Source of the DNA: Heteronotia binoei
Taxonomy: Eukaryota
Assembly (NCBI RefSeq): GCF_032191835.1
Contig: NC_083243.1
Span: forward strand, 32,364,001-32,428,000
Direction of reading: 5' to 3'
Length of the DNA: 64,000 bases
How positions within the stretch are numbered: position 1 is the stretch's first letter; each line of letters opens with the position of its first letter. The position numbers and the translations under genes were made by a program. Shown one piece after another: positions 1-56,075 of this stretch. The notes beneath the pieces were generated by a model. That model did no database searches. It was not told the DNA's origin and saw nothing but the letters and a program-made list of their open reading frames with translations.

Positions 1-824
1 TCTTTTGGGGCTCATAGAATTGGACCCCCTGGTCCAATCGTTTTGAAACTTGGAGGGTACTTTGGGGAGAGGCACTAGATACTATATTGAAAATTTGGTG
101 CCTCTACCTCAAAAAACAGCTCCCCCAGAGCCCTCAAAACCTCCAGATCAATTCCCCATTATACCCTATGAGAATTGATCTCCACATAGGGAATAATGAA
201 GACGTTTCCTTCTCCTCCTCCCTCTCCCCCCCCCCCCCCCGTTTCTGGCAAATCTGATGCAGAGACTGGCCTCTCTACTCACGAGTTGCTGCCAGCTTCT
301 TTACAGCAACACAGTCACACCATCCCAAAGTGAAGCCTTGCAATCAAGCCTCCGGAGGTGCAATTTGCTGCCCGCTCGCTCTTGCAGCCTGAGTCCTGGC
401 CTGGCCTGCCCCCTCCCCTTCTGATAGACGACCTCCTCACCTCAGGACAGGACTGAAGGAGAGCGGAGCAGGACGCCGCCGCTGTGCGCTGCTGCCCGCT
501 CGCTCTTGCAGCCTGAGTCCTGGCCTGGCCTGCCCCCTCCCCTTCTGATAGACGACCTCCTCACCTCAGGTCAGGACTGGAACAGGCCGCCGCCGCTGCG
601 CGCTGCTGCCCGCTCCCCTTCTCTGATTGACCTCAGAGGGGAGGGGAGCGGAGCAGGCCGCCGCCGCTGCCTCTTCTTCAACTTGCTGCTCCGAAGGACC
701 CGGACTCGCGGCCTTTGCGCCATTCCCCCCTTCCCGCCCCCCGCTTCTGTTTTTTTGGGACAGCGGGGGAGGAGGGTGCAAAACCGGGGGTCCCCCCGCC
801 AGGGCGGGAGGGTTGGGAAGCCTA
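1..824 (+). mobile_element. Non-autonomous hAT (Tip100/Zaphod-like) element, long variant with GC-rich interior; left end lies outside the window
   Basis: 1-200 matches the interior of the 509-bp element at 39558-40066 (ggggctcatagaattggacccc...). It ends in GGGTTGGGAAGCCTA, the same right end as at 36992 and 41844. Confidence 0.8.
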
Positions 825-3547: not shown

Positions 3548-3715
3548 NNNNNNNNNNNNNNNNNNNNNNNNNNNNNNNNNNNNNNNNNNNNNNNNNNNNN
3601 NNNNNNNNNNNNNNNNNNNNNNNNNNNNNNNNNNNNNNNNNNNNNNNNNNNNNNNNNNNNNNNNNNNNNNNNNNNNNNNNNNNNNNNNNNNNNNNNNNNN
3701 NNNNNNNNNNNNNNN
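3548..3715. other. Assembly gap (168 N), directly after a CR1 3'-end fragment (ggactagatgaccctggaggtcccttcca)
   Basis: Run of N in the sequence. Confidence 1.
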
Positions 3716-3819: not shown

Positions 3820-4030
3820 GTAGGGTTGCCAGGTCTCCCCTACCTAGAAGAGGGAGGGGTACGGTGGCCTGATCCATCATGGGAAACTCCTGGAGATTTG
3901 GGGATGGAGCCTGGGGAGGACAGGACTTTAGTGGGTTAAAATGCCATAGGGTCCACCTTCCAAAGCATCCATTTTCTCCAGAGGAACTGACTTCTATAGC
4001 CTGGAGATGAGATATGATTCTGCGGGGTCC
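3820..4030 (+). mobile_element. Short TAGGGTTGCCA-family hAT MITE, partial. Further whole or partial copies lie near 5150, 5900, 6405, 11130, 20020, 24925, 27210, 27836, 34790, 37955, 40115, 40300, 43190, 45255, 52690, 54135 and 57925
   Basis: TIR tagggttgccagg; shared body ggagattttggg...ccatagagtccaccttccaaagcagccattttctccagaggaactga. Confidence 0.8.
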
Positions 4031-14475: not shown

Positions 14476-14562
14476 TAACGTTCCTTCTTGATTGTTGTCC
14501 CCAGCAACATGTATTCCAAATGGTTAATAGCTGTTCATGGAGGGAAGGTAACATGGTATAGC

Positions 14563-15062
14563 TAGAGTTCCCAATCCCCAGGTGGGGCAGGGAATCCCCT
14601 GGTTTGGAGGCCCTCCTCCCACTTCAGGGTAATCAGAAAGCAGTGTGTGTGTGGGGGGAGAAATCTCTGCTGGGTACTCCATTATTCCCCATGGAGATCG
14701 ATTCCCATAGGGTATAATGGTGAATTGATCAGAGGGTATCTGGGGCTCCGGGGGGGTGAGTTTTTTTGAGGTAGAGGCACCTAATTTGCAGTATAGCATC
14801 CAGTACCTCTCCTCAAAACACCCTTCAAGTTTCAAAGGGGGTCCAATTCTATGAGCCCCAAAAGAAGGTGCCCCTATTCTTCATTATTTCCAATGAAGGG
14901 AAGGCGTTTAAAAGGTTTCCAGTCCCTTTAAATGTGATGGCCAAACTCCCTTTGGAGTTCAATCATGCTTGTCACAACCTTGCTCCTGGCTCCACCCTCA
15001 AAGTCTCCTGGCTTCACCCCCAAAGTCCCCTGGTAATTTTTGAATTGGACTTGGGAACCCTA
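14563..15062 (-). mobile_element. ~500-bp non-autonomous hAT element
   Basis: Reverse complement of the 39558-40066 family; TSD GGTATAGC/GGTACAGC (7/8). Confidence 0.9.
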
Positions 15063-36394: not shown

Positions 36395-36630
36395 AGGATA
36401 TAAGAAGAGCCCTGATGTATCAGACCGATGGTCTGTCTAGACCAGAATTCTGTCTCACACAGTGGCCAACAAGATCCTCTGGAGGGTCAGCAACAGGGCA
36501 CAGAGCTTTCCCTTGATTTTGCCTTCCTGGCACTGGGATTGAGAGGTTGACTACCTCTGGGCATGGAGGTTTCCTTTAGTTACATGGCTAGTAGCCACTG
36601 ATACATCCAACCTCTATGAATTTATCTAAT
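36395..36630 (-). mobile_element. CR1 3' UTR fragment (another at about 47255-47450)
   Basis: ataagaagagccctg...tgtctcacacagtggccaac, matching the CR1 3' end at 21385-21600. Confidence 0.7.
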
Positions 36631-36637
36631 CACCCAG

Positions 36638-36992
36638 AAGGACCCAGATTCGCAGCTTGCCACGCTCCTGGCCTGCCTCCACCCCCCCCCCTTCTCTGAT
36701 TTTACCTCAGAGTCGGAGCAGGCGATGGCGCTGCGCTGCTGCCGCCTCTTCTCAGCTTCATCTTAGCTGCTCCTCCGAGATGGGCTTAGCCTGAGCCCAT
36801 CTTGGAGGAGCAGCTACGGTGAGCGGAGAAGTGGTGGCAGCCGCGCAGCGGCACCACCCGCTCCGAGATGGGGCGGCTCGCCGCGCTCCTTGGTGCTGTT
36901 TCCCCCTCCCCCCGCTTCTGTTTTTTGGGGAGCGGGGGAAGAGGCTGGAAATCCTGGGGTCCCCCGCCAGGGCGGGAGGGTTGGGAAGCCTA
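36638..36992 (+). mobile_element. Right half of the long hAT family with GC-rich interior
   Basis: Ends GGGAGGGTTGGGAAGCCTA; interior is homologous to about 600-710. Confidence 0.75.
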
Positions 36993-39557: not shown

Positions 39558-40066
39558 TGGGGTTGCCAAGTCCAATTCAAGAACTATCTGGAGACTTTGG
39601 AGGTGGAGCCAGGAGACATTAGGGGTGGAGCCAAGATCAAGGCTGTGAGAAGCATAATTGAACTCCAAAGGGAGTTCTGGCCGTCACATTTAAAGGGACA
39701 GCACACATTTTCAATTCCTTCCTTCCATAGGAAATAATGAAGGATATGGGGCACCTTTTTGGGGGGCTCATAGAATTGGACCCCCTGGTCCAATATTTTT
39801 GAAACTTGGGGGGTATTTTGGGGAGAGGCACTAGATGCTATATTGAAAATTTGGTGCCTCTACCCCAAAACATAGCTCCCCCAGAGCCCCAGATACCCGC
39901 GGATCAATTCTTCATGATTTTCTATGGGAGTAAATCTCTATAGGGAATAACAGAGTTCCCAGCAGACATTTCCTTCCCCTCCCCCCGCTTTCTGATGACC
40001 CTGAAGTGGGGGGAGGGCCTCCAAACTGGGGGATCCCCTGCCCCCGCCTGGGGATTGGCAACCCTA
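39558..40066 (+). mobile_element. 509-bp non-autonomous hAT element inserted in a palindromic MITE
   Basis: Perfect TSD GTGTAGCC (39550-39557 and 40067-40074). Halves of the host MITE lie at about 39500-39557 and 40067-40110. Confidence 0.95.
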
Positions 40067-40647
40067 GTGTAGCCTAATATGCAAAGGAGTTCCTTCTCCA
40101 AAAAAGGCCCTACCTAGTAGGGTTACCAACTCCAGATTGGAAATTCCTGAAGATATAGGAGTGGAGCCTGGGGCAGGGTTTGTGGAAGAAAAGGACCTAA
40201 TACCATAGACTCTGTTTTCCAAAGCAACCATTTTCTCCAAGGGAACTGGTATCTGCAGTCTGGAGTCCCTACACCCTAGGTAATTGCCTAGGTGTATCTT
40301 AGGGTTGCCAGCTATGGGTTGTGAAATTCCTGGAGAGTTTGGGAGTGGAATCTGAGAAAGGTGGGGTTTAAGGAGGGCAGGGACTTCAATGGGATATAAT
40401 GCTATAGAGTTCACCTTCCATAGTGGCCATTTCTCCAGGTGAACTAATCTCTGTTGCCTGGAGATCCATAGTAATAGCAAGAGTTCTCCAGCCACCACTA
40501 GAGGTGGGCAACCATAGTGTATTCAGTAGATGAGCTGGCTCTGACCTCAGTGTAAGTCTAGTTCCACATGGGTTGCCTGCTCTGGGTTGGGAAATACCTG
40601 GAGATTTGGGGTTGGAGCCTGAGGAAGGCAGGGTTTGGGGAGGGGAA

Positions 40648-41844
40648 TAGGGTTGCCAAGTCCAATTCAAGCAATATCTGGGGACTTTGGGGGTGGAGCC
40701 AGGAGACTTTGGGGGTGGAGCCAGGAACAAGGGTGTGACAAGCATAATTGAACTCCAAGGGAGTTCTGGCCCTCACATTTAAAGGGACAGCACACCTTTT
40801 TAAAATGCCTTTCTTCCATAGGAAATAATGAAGGATAAGGGCACCATCTTTTAGGGCTCATAGAATTGGACCCTATGGGAAAATGGGAAAGAGGGCAGAA
40901 GGGGGGGAGCAAAGGAGGGAGAGAGGAAACCAACGTCTCATTAAAACAACCAGGAGGCTGTCAGAACTATACCTTTCCATTAGCTGGAAACTAATGAGCT
41001 GAAGATGCTTTTTCTCCTTGAAGGGGGAGGGGGAACAGGAGCCGGCGAGACAACAGCAGGGGACCCCAGACGGCCTTTGCACGCTGCCCTTCCTCCCGGA
41101 GGACCCAAGGCGGCTTCCACGGCGCCTGGCCCTGGCCACAAGAAGCGCCCTGCGAGGGAGGCTAGGCTGGGTCCCCTCCCCCTCCCGCCTGCCTCTCGTC
41201 GGGGGACCTGGGTGACGAGGGTGGAGTGGAGGCCGGCCTCGCAGTAGTCCCAGCCGCGGGTGCAGGGCCCGGCGGTGCGGCGGTGCGGCGGTGCGGCTAG
41301 CGTTGTGCCGCCGTGGGGGGGGGGGTAGCAAAAGAGGAGGCAGGGGCTCCAGGTGCCGTTGGGCCCGTGGGGCAGGGCGGTGTCGAGGAGGTGGGTGGCG
41401 GAGGCGTTGCAGGGCAGGGCCGGGAGCAGCAGGGCCGGGTCTGGGCGGCAGCGGTGGGGCGGCGTGGCGGAGAGCAGGAGCCCCGCAGCCAGGCCCAGCG
41501 CCAGCGGCACCGCCGGCAGCCCCGAGGCCGCGGCCAGGAGCCGCCCGCGCCGGCCGAAGCCCCCTGCTGGCCCCAGCAGCTGCCAGTCGAAAACCATGCG
41601 CCGCTGCAGCCCCGAGGAGAAGGGAGCGGAGGCTGCCCGGGAGCGCCGGTTGGTGGCGGCGCGGACAGGCTACTACCTGCCGCCTCCTCCTCTCCGCTCC
41701 CGGGTCTGTTGGCTGGTGGGAAGGCCCGGCTCAGGCGCCCTGCCCAGCTCTCTCCCCCCCCCGCCCCCAGACTTGTTGAGAGCGGGGGGGGGGAGGCTGA
41801 AAATTCGGGGGGCCCCCGCCAGGGCGGGAGGGTTGGGAAGCCTA
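40648..41844 (+). mobile_element. Pack-type hAT element (1,197 bp) carrying an SLC22 first exon
   Basis: Left arm 40648-40873 matches 39558-39785. Right arm about 41754-41844 matches about 730-824. Perfect TSD GAGGGGAA (40640-40647 and 41845-41852). The host MITE is continuous across the insertion. Confidence 0.9.
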
Positions 41845-41850
41845 GAGGGG
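41030..41850. promoter_or_regulatory. CpG-island-like segment, mostly transposon cargo
   Basis: Visibly very high GC and CpG density relative to the rest of the window. Confidence 0.7.
41208..41597 (-). pseudogene. SLC22A31: Captured first coding exon of an SLC22 organic ion transporter, most like SLC22A31 (130 codons)
   Basis: MVFDWQLLGPAGGFGRR.RLLAAAS..P, HRCRPDPALL.PAL, WSPCLLF.YP, PCTRGWDY and STLVTQ fit the SLC22 N-terminus, TM1 and extracellular loop. It ends where the family's first intron normally falls (before WDLVC). I found no later exons. Confidence 0.75.
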
Positions 41851-43349
41851 AAGGACCTCAGCAGGGTACACCCGCCAAAGCGCTATTTTCTTCAAGGCAC
41901 TGACCTCCGTTTTCTGAAAATCAGCTGTAATAGTGGGAGATCTCCAGGCCCCAGTTCAGCAACCTCAGGGATGGGAATTTTTGGAGACATATCTTGGAAA
42001 GTGGTGGTGCATTTTCTTATATAATTTCAGACTGAGTTCCACTTTCAGGCAAGGGACTTCTCAGGGTCCCAGGGACAAGCTAGATGTTTGATCTGTGGCC
42101 AACTGCTGCTATTTTATGAAATAATTTGACCATTTAAAACCAGCACAAGATTTTGGTACTAGAAAAAGCATCAGGGGGAGGGAGATATGAGAAGCTTGAC
42201 TGGTCCCCCCATGTTGCGAGCCCTCGCAGGATTTTTGAATTGGTTATATTCTTTCCTAAAATGGAAGCGACATCTAATTTGGCCCTCAGTGTCTGAACAC
42301 ACATTACAAAGAGCATGCTGCTTGAAGGCAAGGACTTCAGCCTGCCTCTTGAAATGTGCCCCGCACACTTGCAAACATAGTTCTCTGAAAGAAGATGTAA
42401 GCACACAATCTGTCCACATTTGTTTGAGTACCTTCCTTAACATTATTTGGGGAAGTTACCACTTTTAGGATTTTACCTATGAACACATATTTCAAATATA
42501 TGTAGGATGGAGAATAAATACATAATACACAAAATTGGTTTTTAACTGGCATCATAGCTAATGAACCAAATTATTTACTTTCAGGCAGCAAGGCTGAAAA
42601 CTCTGATCATTTGACATTTTATGGTCTCTGGTTTCCCAGCTGGGAAAAAAAATGGTTACACTTTCAGAGTTCTGCTATAAAATGCTTTCATTTGACGGTT
42701 CTACTAAAAAAAAAATCAACAGCGTGTGCATATATGGAAAGAGCAAGTCCTTTGGGATGAAGCTTCCCTATGAAAAGATTAGCAGTCTTGGTAAGGCTAG
42801 AGGGAAACCATTTCTGCAGCAGTTCTCAGTGTCTCCAATAGAATTCCTCTAAAGCAAGCAGAGTCACAATGTCAGCATCCCTTCACCCAGGATGACATCT
42901 GGAAGAAAAGAAAACTGGAACCAAAAGCACATTATTTTGATAATTATGTAATAGCGTTACTGAGCTTAAGCCTGCCAGTTAAGAACCTAAACCTACCTTA
43001 ATGACCTTTAGTCCAAAAATGTATTTCCGCCCAGGCTTTTAACTGGGAGTGGGATTCCATCTCAACGTGGGCAGGCCCTGCTGAGGTAACACAAACTACA
43101 ACAAAAAGGACAGACCATGAGGATAGAGTCCACTTTTTCATCAGTGGAGACACACCCTGGCTTTTGTTCATACTAAACAGATGTTTCTTAGCCTCCTGGT
43201 GGGACTCAGAGTTCTCCTAGAATTACTGATCTTCGTACTACAGAAGATCAGTCCCCCTGGAGGAAATGACAGCTTCAGAGGGTGAACTTTATGGTGTCAT
43301 ATCCTCATTTAGCACCCACCTGTTCTCAAACTGCACAATCCCTTGGCAC

Positions 43350-54298: not shown

Positions 54299-56075
54299 AA
54301 TAATAATAATAATAATACCTTTTATTTATATCCCGCCCTCCCTGCCGAAGCAGGCTCAGGGCGGCTAACAACAAAATTCAATATACATAGTTCAAAACAA
54401 CGTTTTAAACCACAATTAATTAAAAGCTATTAAAATTCTAAAACAGTAAGATTAACATTTTGTGCTATTACCTGGATGGCGAACTTACTTAGCAGTTCTA
54501 GTCTGTGAAGGCCATTTGGAACAAGATGGTCTTGCAGGCCCTGCGGAATTGCTCAAAGTCCCGCAGGGCCCGCATTTCTTCTGGAATTGGTTCCATAACT
54601 GTGGGGCCATAACAGAAAGCCTGGGTACGGGTACTCTGAAGTTTTACCTCTTTTGGCCCGGGGATAGTCAGCAGGTTCTTCCCTGCTGACCTCAGTGCTC
54701 TCTGGGGTTCATGTGGGGAGAGATGGTCCCTAAGGTAGGCGGGTCCTCGGCCATATAGGGTTTTAAAGTTAATGACCAGCACTTTGTAACAAATCCGGTA
54801 AGTAACTGGTAGCCAGTGCAGTTCACGCAGTCCCGGCTGTATGTGCTCCGACTTTGGGAGCCCCAGCAGTAATCTAGCAGCCGCGTTCTGCACTAGCTGC
54901 AGCTTCCGGGTTCGGCACAGAGGCAGCCCCATGTAGAGGGCATTACAGTAATCTAATCTCGAGCTGATGGTTGCGTGGATCACTGTTGCCAGGTCCCGAC
55001 GCTCCAGGAAGGGAGCCAGCTGCCTCGCCCGCCTCTGGTGAAAAAAGGCTGACTTGGCAGTGGCTGCTATATGGGCCTCCATTGATAATGAAGGCTCCAG
55101 TAGAACTCCCAGGCTCTTGACCCGGCGTCAAAAACCGGGAGAGATATTTCTCCTCCCAGAGCGCCCCGACCTAAGCAAAGGACCTCTGTCTTCGCTGGAT
55201 TCAGTTTCAGCCCACTCAGTCTTAACCAAGTTGCCACAGCCTGCAGTGCCAGGTCCAAATTCTCTGGAACGCATCCAGGCCGGCCGTCCATCAGCAAATA
55301 GAGCTGGGTGTCATCTGCACATTGGTGACACCCAAGCCCATACCTCCTGGCAATCAGGGCAAGGGGGCGCATATAGATATTAAATAGCATTGGTGATAGA
55401 ACTGCTCCCTGAGGCACATCACAATGTAGTGTGCGTCTCTGGGAGAGCTCTCCCTTGATTGCCACCCTTTGTCCCCGATCCTCGAGGAAGGAGGAAAGCC
55501 ATTGTAAGGCCAACCCCCCAACCCTGACATTGGCGAGGCGGTGGGTCAGTAGCCGGTGGTCGACCGTATTGAATGCGGCCAACAGATCTAACAGCATCAG
55601 CACCGCCACACCGCCTCGATCCAGATGCCGCTGGAGGTCATCCGCTAAGGCGACCAGCACTGTCTCCATCCCATAGCCTGGGCGAAAGTCGGACTGGCAA
55701 GGGTCTAGGACAGAAGCGTCATCCAGAAAGCCCTGCAACTGCAACGCCACTGCCCTCTCTATAATTTTACCTAAAAACGGTAAATTCGAGACCGGTTGGT
55801 AGTTTGCCAATTTGGCAGGGTCTGCTGTACTCTTTTTCAGGAGGGGATGGACCAGGGCCTCTTTTAGGGGCGTTGGAAAGCGCCCCTCCAGGAGGGATCT
55901 ATTTATGATGTCCCCTAAAGGACATCCAAGCTCCCTCAGGCAAGGTTTAATCAGCCAAGAGGGGCACGGGTCCAAATCACAAGTTGTTGGGCGTGCAGAG
56001 GAGAGAATTCCGTCGACTTCCTCCAAGACAGCATGGATAAAAGTTTCTTGCCTGCCAGTATCATGGTTAAAAGAG
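54299..56075 (-). mobile_element. 5'-truncated L2-clade LINE (RT plus C-terminus), inactivated
   Basis: ORF 55067-56026 (DPCPSW...YQPVSNLPFLGKIIER...VPQGAVLSPMLFNIY...ADDTQLY) and ORF 54498-55082 (SRLDYCNALY...LQLVQNAAAR...LHWLP) are separated by a frameshift. The 3' UTR ends gggcgggatataaataaa plus (TAT)n. Confidence 0.95.

Follow-up and report, generated by a model that had tools for sequence, protein, structure and literature searches.

A probable Pack-type hAT element enclosing the 5′ end of SLC22A31 in the gecko Heteronotia binoei

How does the entire coding exon 1 of a transporter gene, SLC22A31, come to lie between the two termini of one small DNA transposon, together with its splice donor and sequence of its CpG island? 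The question is raised by a unit of 1,197 bp found at positions 40648–41844 of the 64,000-nucleotide stretch of Heteronotia binoei DNA that was analysed as a whole (hereafter, the window). The answer developed below, which we consider probable, is that the unit is a non-autonomous hAT of the Pack type carrying a 5′ fragment of SLC22A31, and that the chimera was made by template-switching repair. Particular attention is paid to the source of each portion of the cargo, and to whether the fragment was captured in an element already resident at this site or was brought here by transposition.

The insertion unit and its hAT arms

The unit is bordered on both sides by the octamer GAGGGGAA, present at 40640–40647 and again at 41845–41852 (both by direct reading, no strand assigned). 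This target site duplication (TSD) is perfect, with a chance of 1.5e-5 at fixed positions, and the octamer occurs once in the consensus of the MITE that serves as host. The host repeat that the unit interrupts extends over 40565–41960 on the plus strand; it is a related MITE and shares the TAGGGTTGCCA-type end. When the empty site was rebuilt by taking out 40648–41852 and keeping a single TSD copy, at least 10 other host-MITE copies in the window proved colinear across the junction, which reads ...GGGTTTGGGGAGGGGA-GGGACCTCAGC... The perfect duplication and the host read-through, both of which had been claimed in the original prediction, thus identify the unit as a single insertion into an older MITE. 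In the small DNA contig sets of two other organisms (runs X1 and X2), a contig joining 40643 to 41853 with TAT between them was considered as a natural empty site and rejected, since the simplest reading is that it represents a further host-MITE copy. The terminal TAGGGTTGCCA motif is common to several different MITE families including the host repeat (sites at 3821, 5152, 24928, 27836, 40300 and 47016, plus others on the reverse strand), and a single transposase may have served all the families with this end. The window also contains a run of 168 N at 3548–3715, either a gap or masked sequence.

The left arm (40648–40873, plus strand) consists of the 5′ 226 bp of a 509-bp hAT-like MITE family, starting with the terminal inverted repeat (TIR) TAGGGTTGCCAAGTCC. 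Its identity to the family's three full-length members at 39558–40067, 15060–14562, and 30686–30181 is 89, 88, and 84%, respectively. It has a CpG observed/expected ratio (o/e) of 0.00, and breaks off directly after ATTGGACCC, just where the break had been placed. The right arm (41747–41844, plus strand, 98 bp) is the right end of a variant of the same family, here called A′, and it finishes in GGGTTGGGAAGCCTA. This variant GGGAAGCCTA end is found twice more in the window, at 733–824 and 36895–36992. Over its full length the arm is 79% identical to 36895–36992, and its portion 41773–41844 is 84% identical to 752–824, in agreement with its earlier assignment to the family's right end. The last 32 bp are identical across the three A′ right ends, with a common final CCCCCGCCAGGGCGGGAGGGTTGGGAAGCCTA, and the A′ arm is homologous to the ordinary family right end, TAGGGTTGCCAATC, as a diverged version of it.

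Each of the four members of the family found in the window is flanked by an 8-bp TSD: GTGTAGCC (8/8), GCTGTACC/GCTATACC (7/8), CAATTAGA (8/8), and GAGGGGAA (8/8). The TIRs are imperfect and of the TAGGG type, TAGGGTTGCCAAGTCC agreeing with the reverse complement of the right end TAGGCTTCCCAACCCT at 12 of 16 positions. They fit the short YAGNG-type TIR, which is a mark of hAT elements seen at the ends of Ac, hobo, and Tol2. Judged by its 8-bp TSDs and TAGGG-type imperfect TIRs, the 509-bp family is a non-autonomous hAT (MITE). No transposase ORF was found in the 64-kb window, where the only Pfam match among the long ORFs is to a LINE reverse transcriptase. A 319-aa ORF at 55067–56026 on the minus strand carries an RVT_1 domain (E = 9e-27), and is a remnant of a LINE-type retroelement.

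The SLC22A31 cargo and its flanks

Between the arms, the minus strand carries an uninterrupted ORF of 130 codons (41597–41208) running from an ATG to a conserved exon boundary. Over its full length it aligns with the N-terminus of SLC22 transporters of solved structure, and a search of a library of 1.8 billion proteins returned full-length SLC22A31 matches at E = 1e-28 to 1e-33, the best of which are named SLC22A31 by their sources. At the nucleotide level the exon is 72–79% identical to those of Gekko kuhli, Eublepharis, Paroedura, and Sphaerodactylus (77–79% for Eublepharis and Gekko kuhli). Its 3′ edge coincides with the exon 1/intron 1 boundary of the orthologues, VTQ|GT, after which the orthologues continue with WDLVC. 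The original prediction of an SLC22 first exon ending at the first-intron position can therefore be sharpened: the cargo is SLC22A31 end to end, up to the VTQ|GT boundary. In the protein tree this copy falls within the geckos (support 83/81), so it belongs to the host lineage's own gene and has no outside origin.

Pfam gave no match to exon 1 alone. For a same-species protein, word-index and exhaustive HMMER searches returned only SLC22A31 orthologues, at no more than 67% amino acid identity, and the exact cargo ORFs are absent from the protein collection. Logan contigs for P0001 and P0002 were set aside, as they are native skink-like genes with exons 2–3 and without shared repeats.

How far does the gene extend on either side of this exon? 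Downstream of the GT donor, homology to Eublepharis and Paroedura continues to 41175/41180, giving the first ~35–55 bp of intron 1 (annotated as 41151–41207, minus strand). Beyond it lies an inner segment with approximate boundaries 40874–41150 (no strand assigned; GC 54%, CpG o/e 0.33), which has no homology to any of six SLC22A31 loci and putatively comes from a separate source. Read in the orientation of the gene, this segment shows a pyrimidine tract and an AG at its junction with the arm. Most of it (40880–41095) recurs at 96% identity on a 371-nt contig of depth 16 from run X1, another organism; the remaining 155 nt of that contig are not on the left arm and are unlike it. Pieces of the segment are also present in run X2, from a second other organism, at up to 99% identity. 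Intron 1 measures 85–207 bp in four gecko genomes, and the cargo has 333 bp after the donor with no exon 2. Because homology to the intron ends at ~41175, gecko introns are this short, and 40880–41095 stands elsewhere in another context, sequence comparison indicates that the cargo is probably composite, made of a piece of SLC22A31 (~41150 to 41632, perhaps 41746) and ~275 bp from another source, possibly a repeated one. The inner segment might instead be a long lineage-specific intron 1 containing a repeat, but this is not the simplest reading. The ~330 bp of intron 1 foreseen in the original prediction are thus doubtful, given where the gecko-intron homology stops and the other context of 40880–41095 in contigs of two organisms.

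On the other side of the exon, GC-rich sequence (41598–41746, minus strand; GC 75%, CpG o/e 0.71) occupies the place of a putative 5′ leader or promoter. Homology to the orthologues reaches 41607–41632, that is, ~10–35 bp before the ATG. Of the ~150-bp leader that had been proposed, the proximal ~35 bp are therefore upheld by homology, and the rest has just a weak 28-bp match to Paroedura (41718–41745, at about −100 in that genome). Since homology to the native gene covers the start of intron 1 beyond the donor as well as sequence preceding the ATG, the cargo is not a retrocopy.

Assembly of the chimera and competing explanations

In the mechanism that we propose, an element of the GGGAAGCCTA-ended subtype would have had ~185 bp of its MITE interior replaced by ~870 bp of foreign DNA. 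Replication or repair would have stalled, or the DNA broken, at secondary structures, with subsequent template switching into open GC-rich chromatin (gap filling or FoSTeS type). The chimera would thereby have been built by template-switching repair between two places in the MITE that form hairpins, and the CpG island of SLC22A31 would have served as template after one switch or more. The two breakpoints bear on this mechanism. The left arm ends in the loop of a hairpin, ATTGGACC-CCCT-GGTCCAAT (dG −7.6 kcal/mol, z −3.4), while a C-tract/G-tract hairpin forms the inner edge of the right arm (dG −20.5 kcal/mol, z −3.5) and has homologous counterparts in the other two A′ right arms. That both boundaries of the cargo lie at hairpins fits stalling or breakage followed by template switching. 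A scan of 40300–42200 against Rfam yielded only sub-threshold chance hairpins. Elsewhere in the window, the family copy at 14562–15060 (minus strand) is missing 12 bp exactly at the ATTGGACC/GGTCCAAT hairpin, a deletion which suggests that the site is a rearrangement hot spot.

Chimeras of this kind have a literature of their own. A survey of 100 animal genomes listed 370 Pack-TIRs, of which 208 are hATs (Tan et al., 2021, Nat Commun; PMC8277862), so such elements are not as rare in animals as had been stated earlier. In that survey a Pack-TIR has two flanks that each match the terminus of a single family over 10 bp or more, an interior of 100–5000 bp, a unique parent in the same genome with at least 90% identity and without TE flanks, and no retrocopy origin. 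The unit has a 226-bp left terminus, a 98-bp right terminus, and an 873-bp interior. With the termini of one family around the 5′ end of SLC22A31 and an 8-bp TSD, it is, as far as its sequence tells, a Pack-hAT, as first proposed, with the origin of the gene portion established from orthologues of other species. Units of this sort are already catalogued in vertebrates, including one with the 5′ UTR of a gene: Pack-hAT-N8_XT of Xenopus tropicalis carries that of CAPSL (PMC8277862).

Was the fragment then captured in place, or did the finished chimera move here? Most animal Pack-TIRs arose without transposition: a break in a resident TE was repaired by copying filler DNA, and the original TSD then flanks the chimera (PMC8277862). 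Weighing this published prior against the features of the present case, we somewhat favor capture in place, within an element whose own earlier insertion at this site had produced the TSD. The other route, formation of the chimera elsewhere followed by its excision and pasting here as a unit (FoSTeST-like), possibly as one of several copies, is given a smaller but still substantial share of belief. It would account for a TSD that encloses the whole chimera, but the same TSD is expected equally if the middle of a resident element was replaced during repair, and so it cannot separate the two routes. The original prediction that the exon was mobilised as a unit is weakened on this very ground, because insertion of the uncaptured element, the main published route, explains the duplication just as well. 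Other features of the case lean away from capture in place. Over the extent of the window, which leaves 22 kb on one side and 40 kb on the other, there is no parental SLC22A31, and 57% of the published cases are within 15 kb of their parent. The share of the element that was replaced is ~36%, where the published median is 4.6% (PMC8277862). Pack-hATs with several copies are known from frog and alligator and in every case lie at a great distance from the parent (PMC8277862), and pieces of the cargo occur at repeat-like depth in two other organisms, with one possible joint of left arm to exon at another breakpoint. The distant parent, the large replacement, and these ambiguous multicopy hints are a better fit to transposition.

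Against it, there is no second copy in the window or in the protein collection, and 98.6% of animal Pack-TIRs are single copy (PMC8277862). Each contig joint comes from one contig of low depth, in sequence that is GC-rich and of low complexity: exon-1 pieces occur in low-coverage contigs (depth 2–7) of the two other organisms, a contig of run X2 appearing to join the left arm at 40800 to the exon at 41432 and one of run X1 returning from 41632 to 41414. Either a related chimera is represented here by rearranged copies, or the GC-rich matches are spurious; the X2 joint could reflect a multicopy family. Nothing here shows movement after capture. By either route, the outcome would be an orphan block of CpG island with a start codon and a splice donor in repeat-rich DNA.

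Two further explanations do away with capture altogether, and both are very improbable. According to the first, the cargo is the genuine promoter and exon 1 of SLC22A31, in a gene with a very long intron 1 or a rearranged one, and the TE arms are independent insertions. The intact ORF, the donor at its expected place, and the preserved CpG-island values would suit a native gene: the cargo is still CpG-island-like, as had been claimed, with a GC content of 76% in surroundings of 45%, and a CpG o/e of 0.66–0.76 compared with 0.23 for the window. But the arms, the TSD, and the host read-through put the exon inside an insertion, and its later exons are missing from the 41 kb downstream. When the 64-kb window was searched by tblastn with four full-length SLC22 proteins, exon 1 alone was found, which confirms the earlier failure to find exon 2; exons 2–10, encoding the 12-TM MFS core that a functional SLC22A31 has, are thus absent from it. 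Nor does the window have the native synteny, as tblastx with the native flanks found no ANKRD11 or CDH15 sequence in it, only repeats. Gecko SLC22A31 genes are compact (4.9–11 kb in four geckos, with intron 1 of at most 207 bp) and adjoin a cadherin gene that is CDH15 judging from its position; ANKRD11 lies on the opposite side in Paroedura, the sole gecko whose flank reached that far. No hAT arms are present at the native exon 1 in six loci.

The copy has also decayed, which speaks against a native gene as well. Among 33 CpGs common to three native orthologues, 6 are now TG or CA in the copy and five more have been lost otherwise; the native orthologues show such a TG/CA change at 0 of 72 comparable sites (Fisher p = 0.0007), a contrast that could in principle be a lineage effect and not specific to the copy. 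A perfect 8-bp microsatellite, (CGGCGGTG)x3.5, occupies 41270–41297 within the exon, where it keeps the frame but replaces the N-x-T motif, so that a conserved N-glycosylation site is lost. Three cysteines have been added, some of them through CGN-to-TGN changes. The number of private changes at near-invariant residues was tried as proof of a pseudogene and rejected: the copy has 4, the third highest value of 24 sequences, which is high but no outlier. In short, the gene fragment in the cargo is real but decaying; it duplicates the 5′ end of SLC22A31 at a non-native place and is not a working gene.

The second of these explanations, an assembly artefact in which a GC-rich piece of contig was misjoined between two MITE fragments, draws on the fact that no X1 or X2 contig spans either inner junction, but a misjoin would not produce both termini of one family in the correct orientation together with a perfect TSD and host read-through, and the same layout recurs in two other A′ arms of the window.

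CpG-rich blocks of the A′ ends and known systems

Capture of SLC22A31 by an A′ element may not be an isolated event. Only three CpG-island-like blocks (GC > 0.6 and o/e > 0.6 in 300-bp windows) are present in the 64 kb, at 451–700, 36601–36750, and 41001–41550, and each of them adjoins the inner side of a GGGAAGCCTA right arm, where all begin at one common boundary. Between the GC-rich blocks of the two remaining A′ elements there is a weak relationship, and neither has homology to the cargo above shuffled controls. The first of them belongs to an element of the same family cut by the start of the window (1–824). It follows the ordinary family up to ~225–246, then carries a ~500-bp GC-rich insert (GC 64%, CpG o/e 0.59) with a tandem duplication of ~125 bp (366–501 and 490–615), bracketed on both sides by CCCCGYTTCTG, and finishes in a right arm of the GGGAAGCCTA type. 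The insert has the look of another filling or capture event, the second in the window. The third GGGAAGCCTA arm, at 36626–36992, comes with 278 bp of GC-rich DNA (CpG o/e 0.67) and a 154-bp palindrome at 36713–36866 that is 83% complementary. Since neither a left arm nor a matching TSD, TGCACACC, is present within 7 kb, this element is truncated.

It is conceivable, though on balance doubtful, that the GGGAAGCCTA-ended subfamily of hAT MITEs is a recurrent catcher of CpG-island DNA by way of a hairpin-bounded slot. If this were true, and if the chimeras transposed, orphan CpG islands and modules made of a start codon and a donor would be scattered through the genome, an animal counterpart of the rice Pack-MULEs, for which a comparable GC-rich bias is described (PMC5861414). 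Were capture by the subfamily systematic, the rate, bias, and fate of exon shuffling by DNA transposons would become directly measurable in a vertebrate. The unit itself is a clean squamate addition to the ~200 known animal Pack-hATs, and its complete coding first exon with donor and CpG-island sequence is unusual, being material from which a new promoter or a chimeric transcript could arise.

Three known systems can be set beside the unit. The first is the native gecko SLC22A31 itself, annotated as putative solute carrier family 22 member 31 (Eublepharis, Paroedura, Gekko kuhli, and Sphaerodactylus), whose exon 1 is colinear with the cargo from the ATG to VTQ|GT at 64–67% amino acid identity. 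Contrary to these genes, the cargo is without exons 2 onward and without the native neighbors, shows CpG-to-TpG/CpA decay and expansion of an 8-bp microsatellite, lacks the conserved N-x-T site, and has the three additional cysteines.

The second system is that of the animal Pack-hATs (PMC8277862). These likewise have non-autonomous hAT termini with an 8-bp TSD and no transposase, an interior replaced by a few hundred base pairs from the 5′ end of a host gene, and TE-internal breakpoints at structure-prone sites. The unit differs from them in its cargo, which appears composite and includes an entire coding exon 1 together with the donor and sequence of the CpG island, in having its parent at least 22–40 kb away, and in a replaced share far above the published median.

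The third system is more remote. Rice Pack-MULEs (PMC5861414) are also TIR elements that duplicate GC-rich gene fragments and raise the local GC content, but they belong to the Mutator superfamily and make TSDs of 9–11 bp. They exist in thousands of copies, with documented transposition and expression, whereas the window contains a single copy of the chimera.
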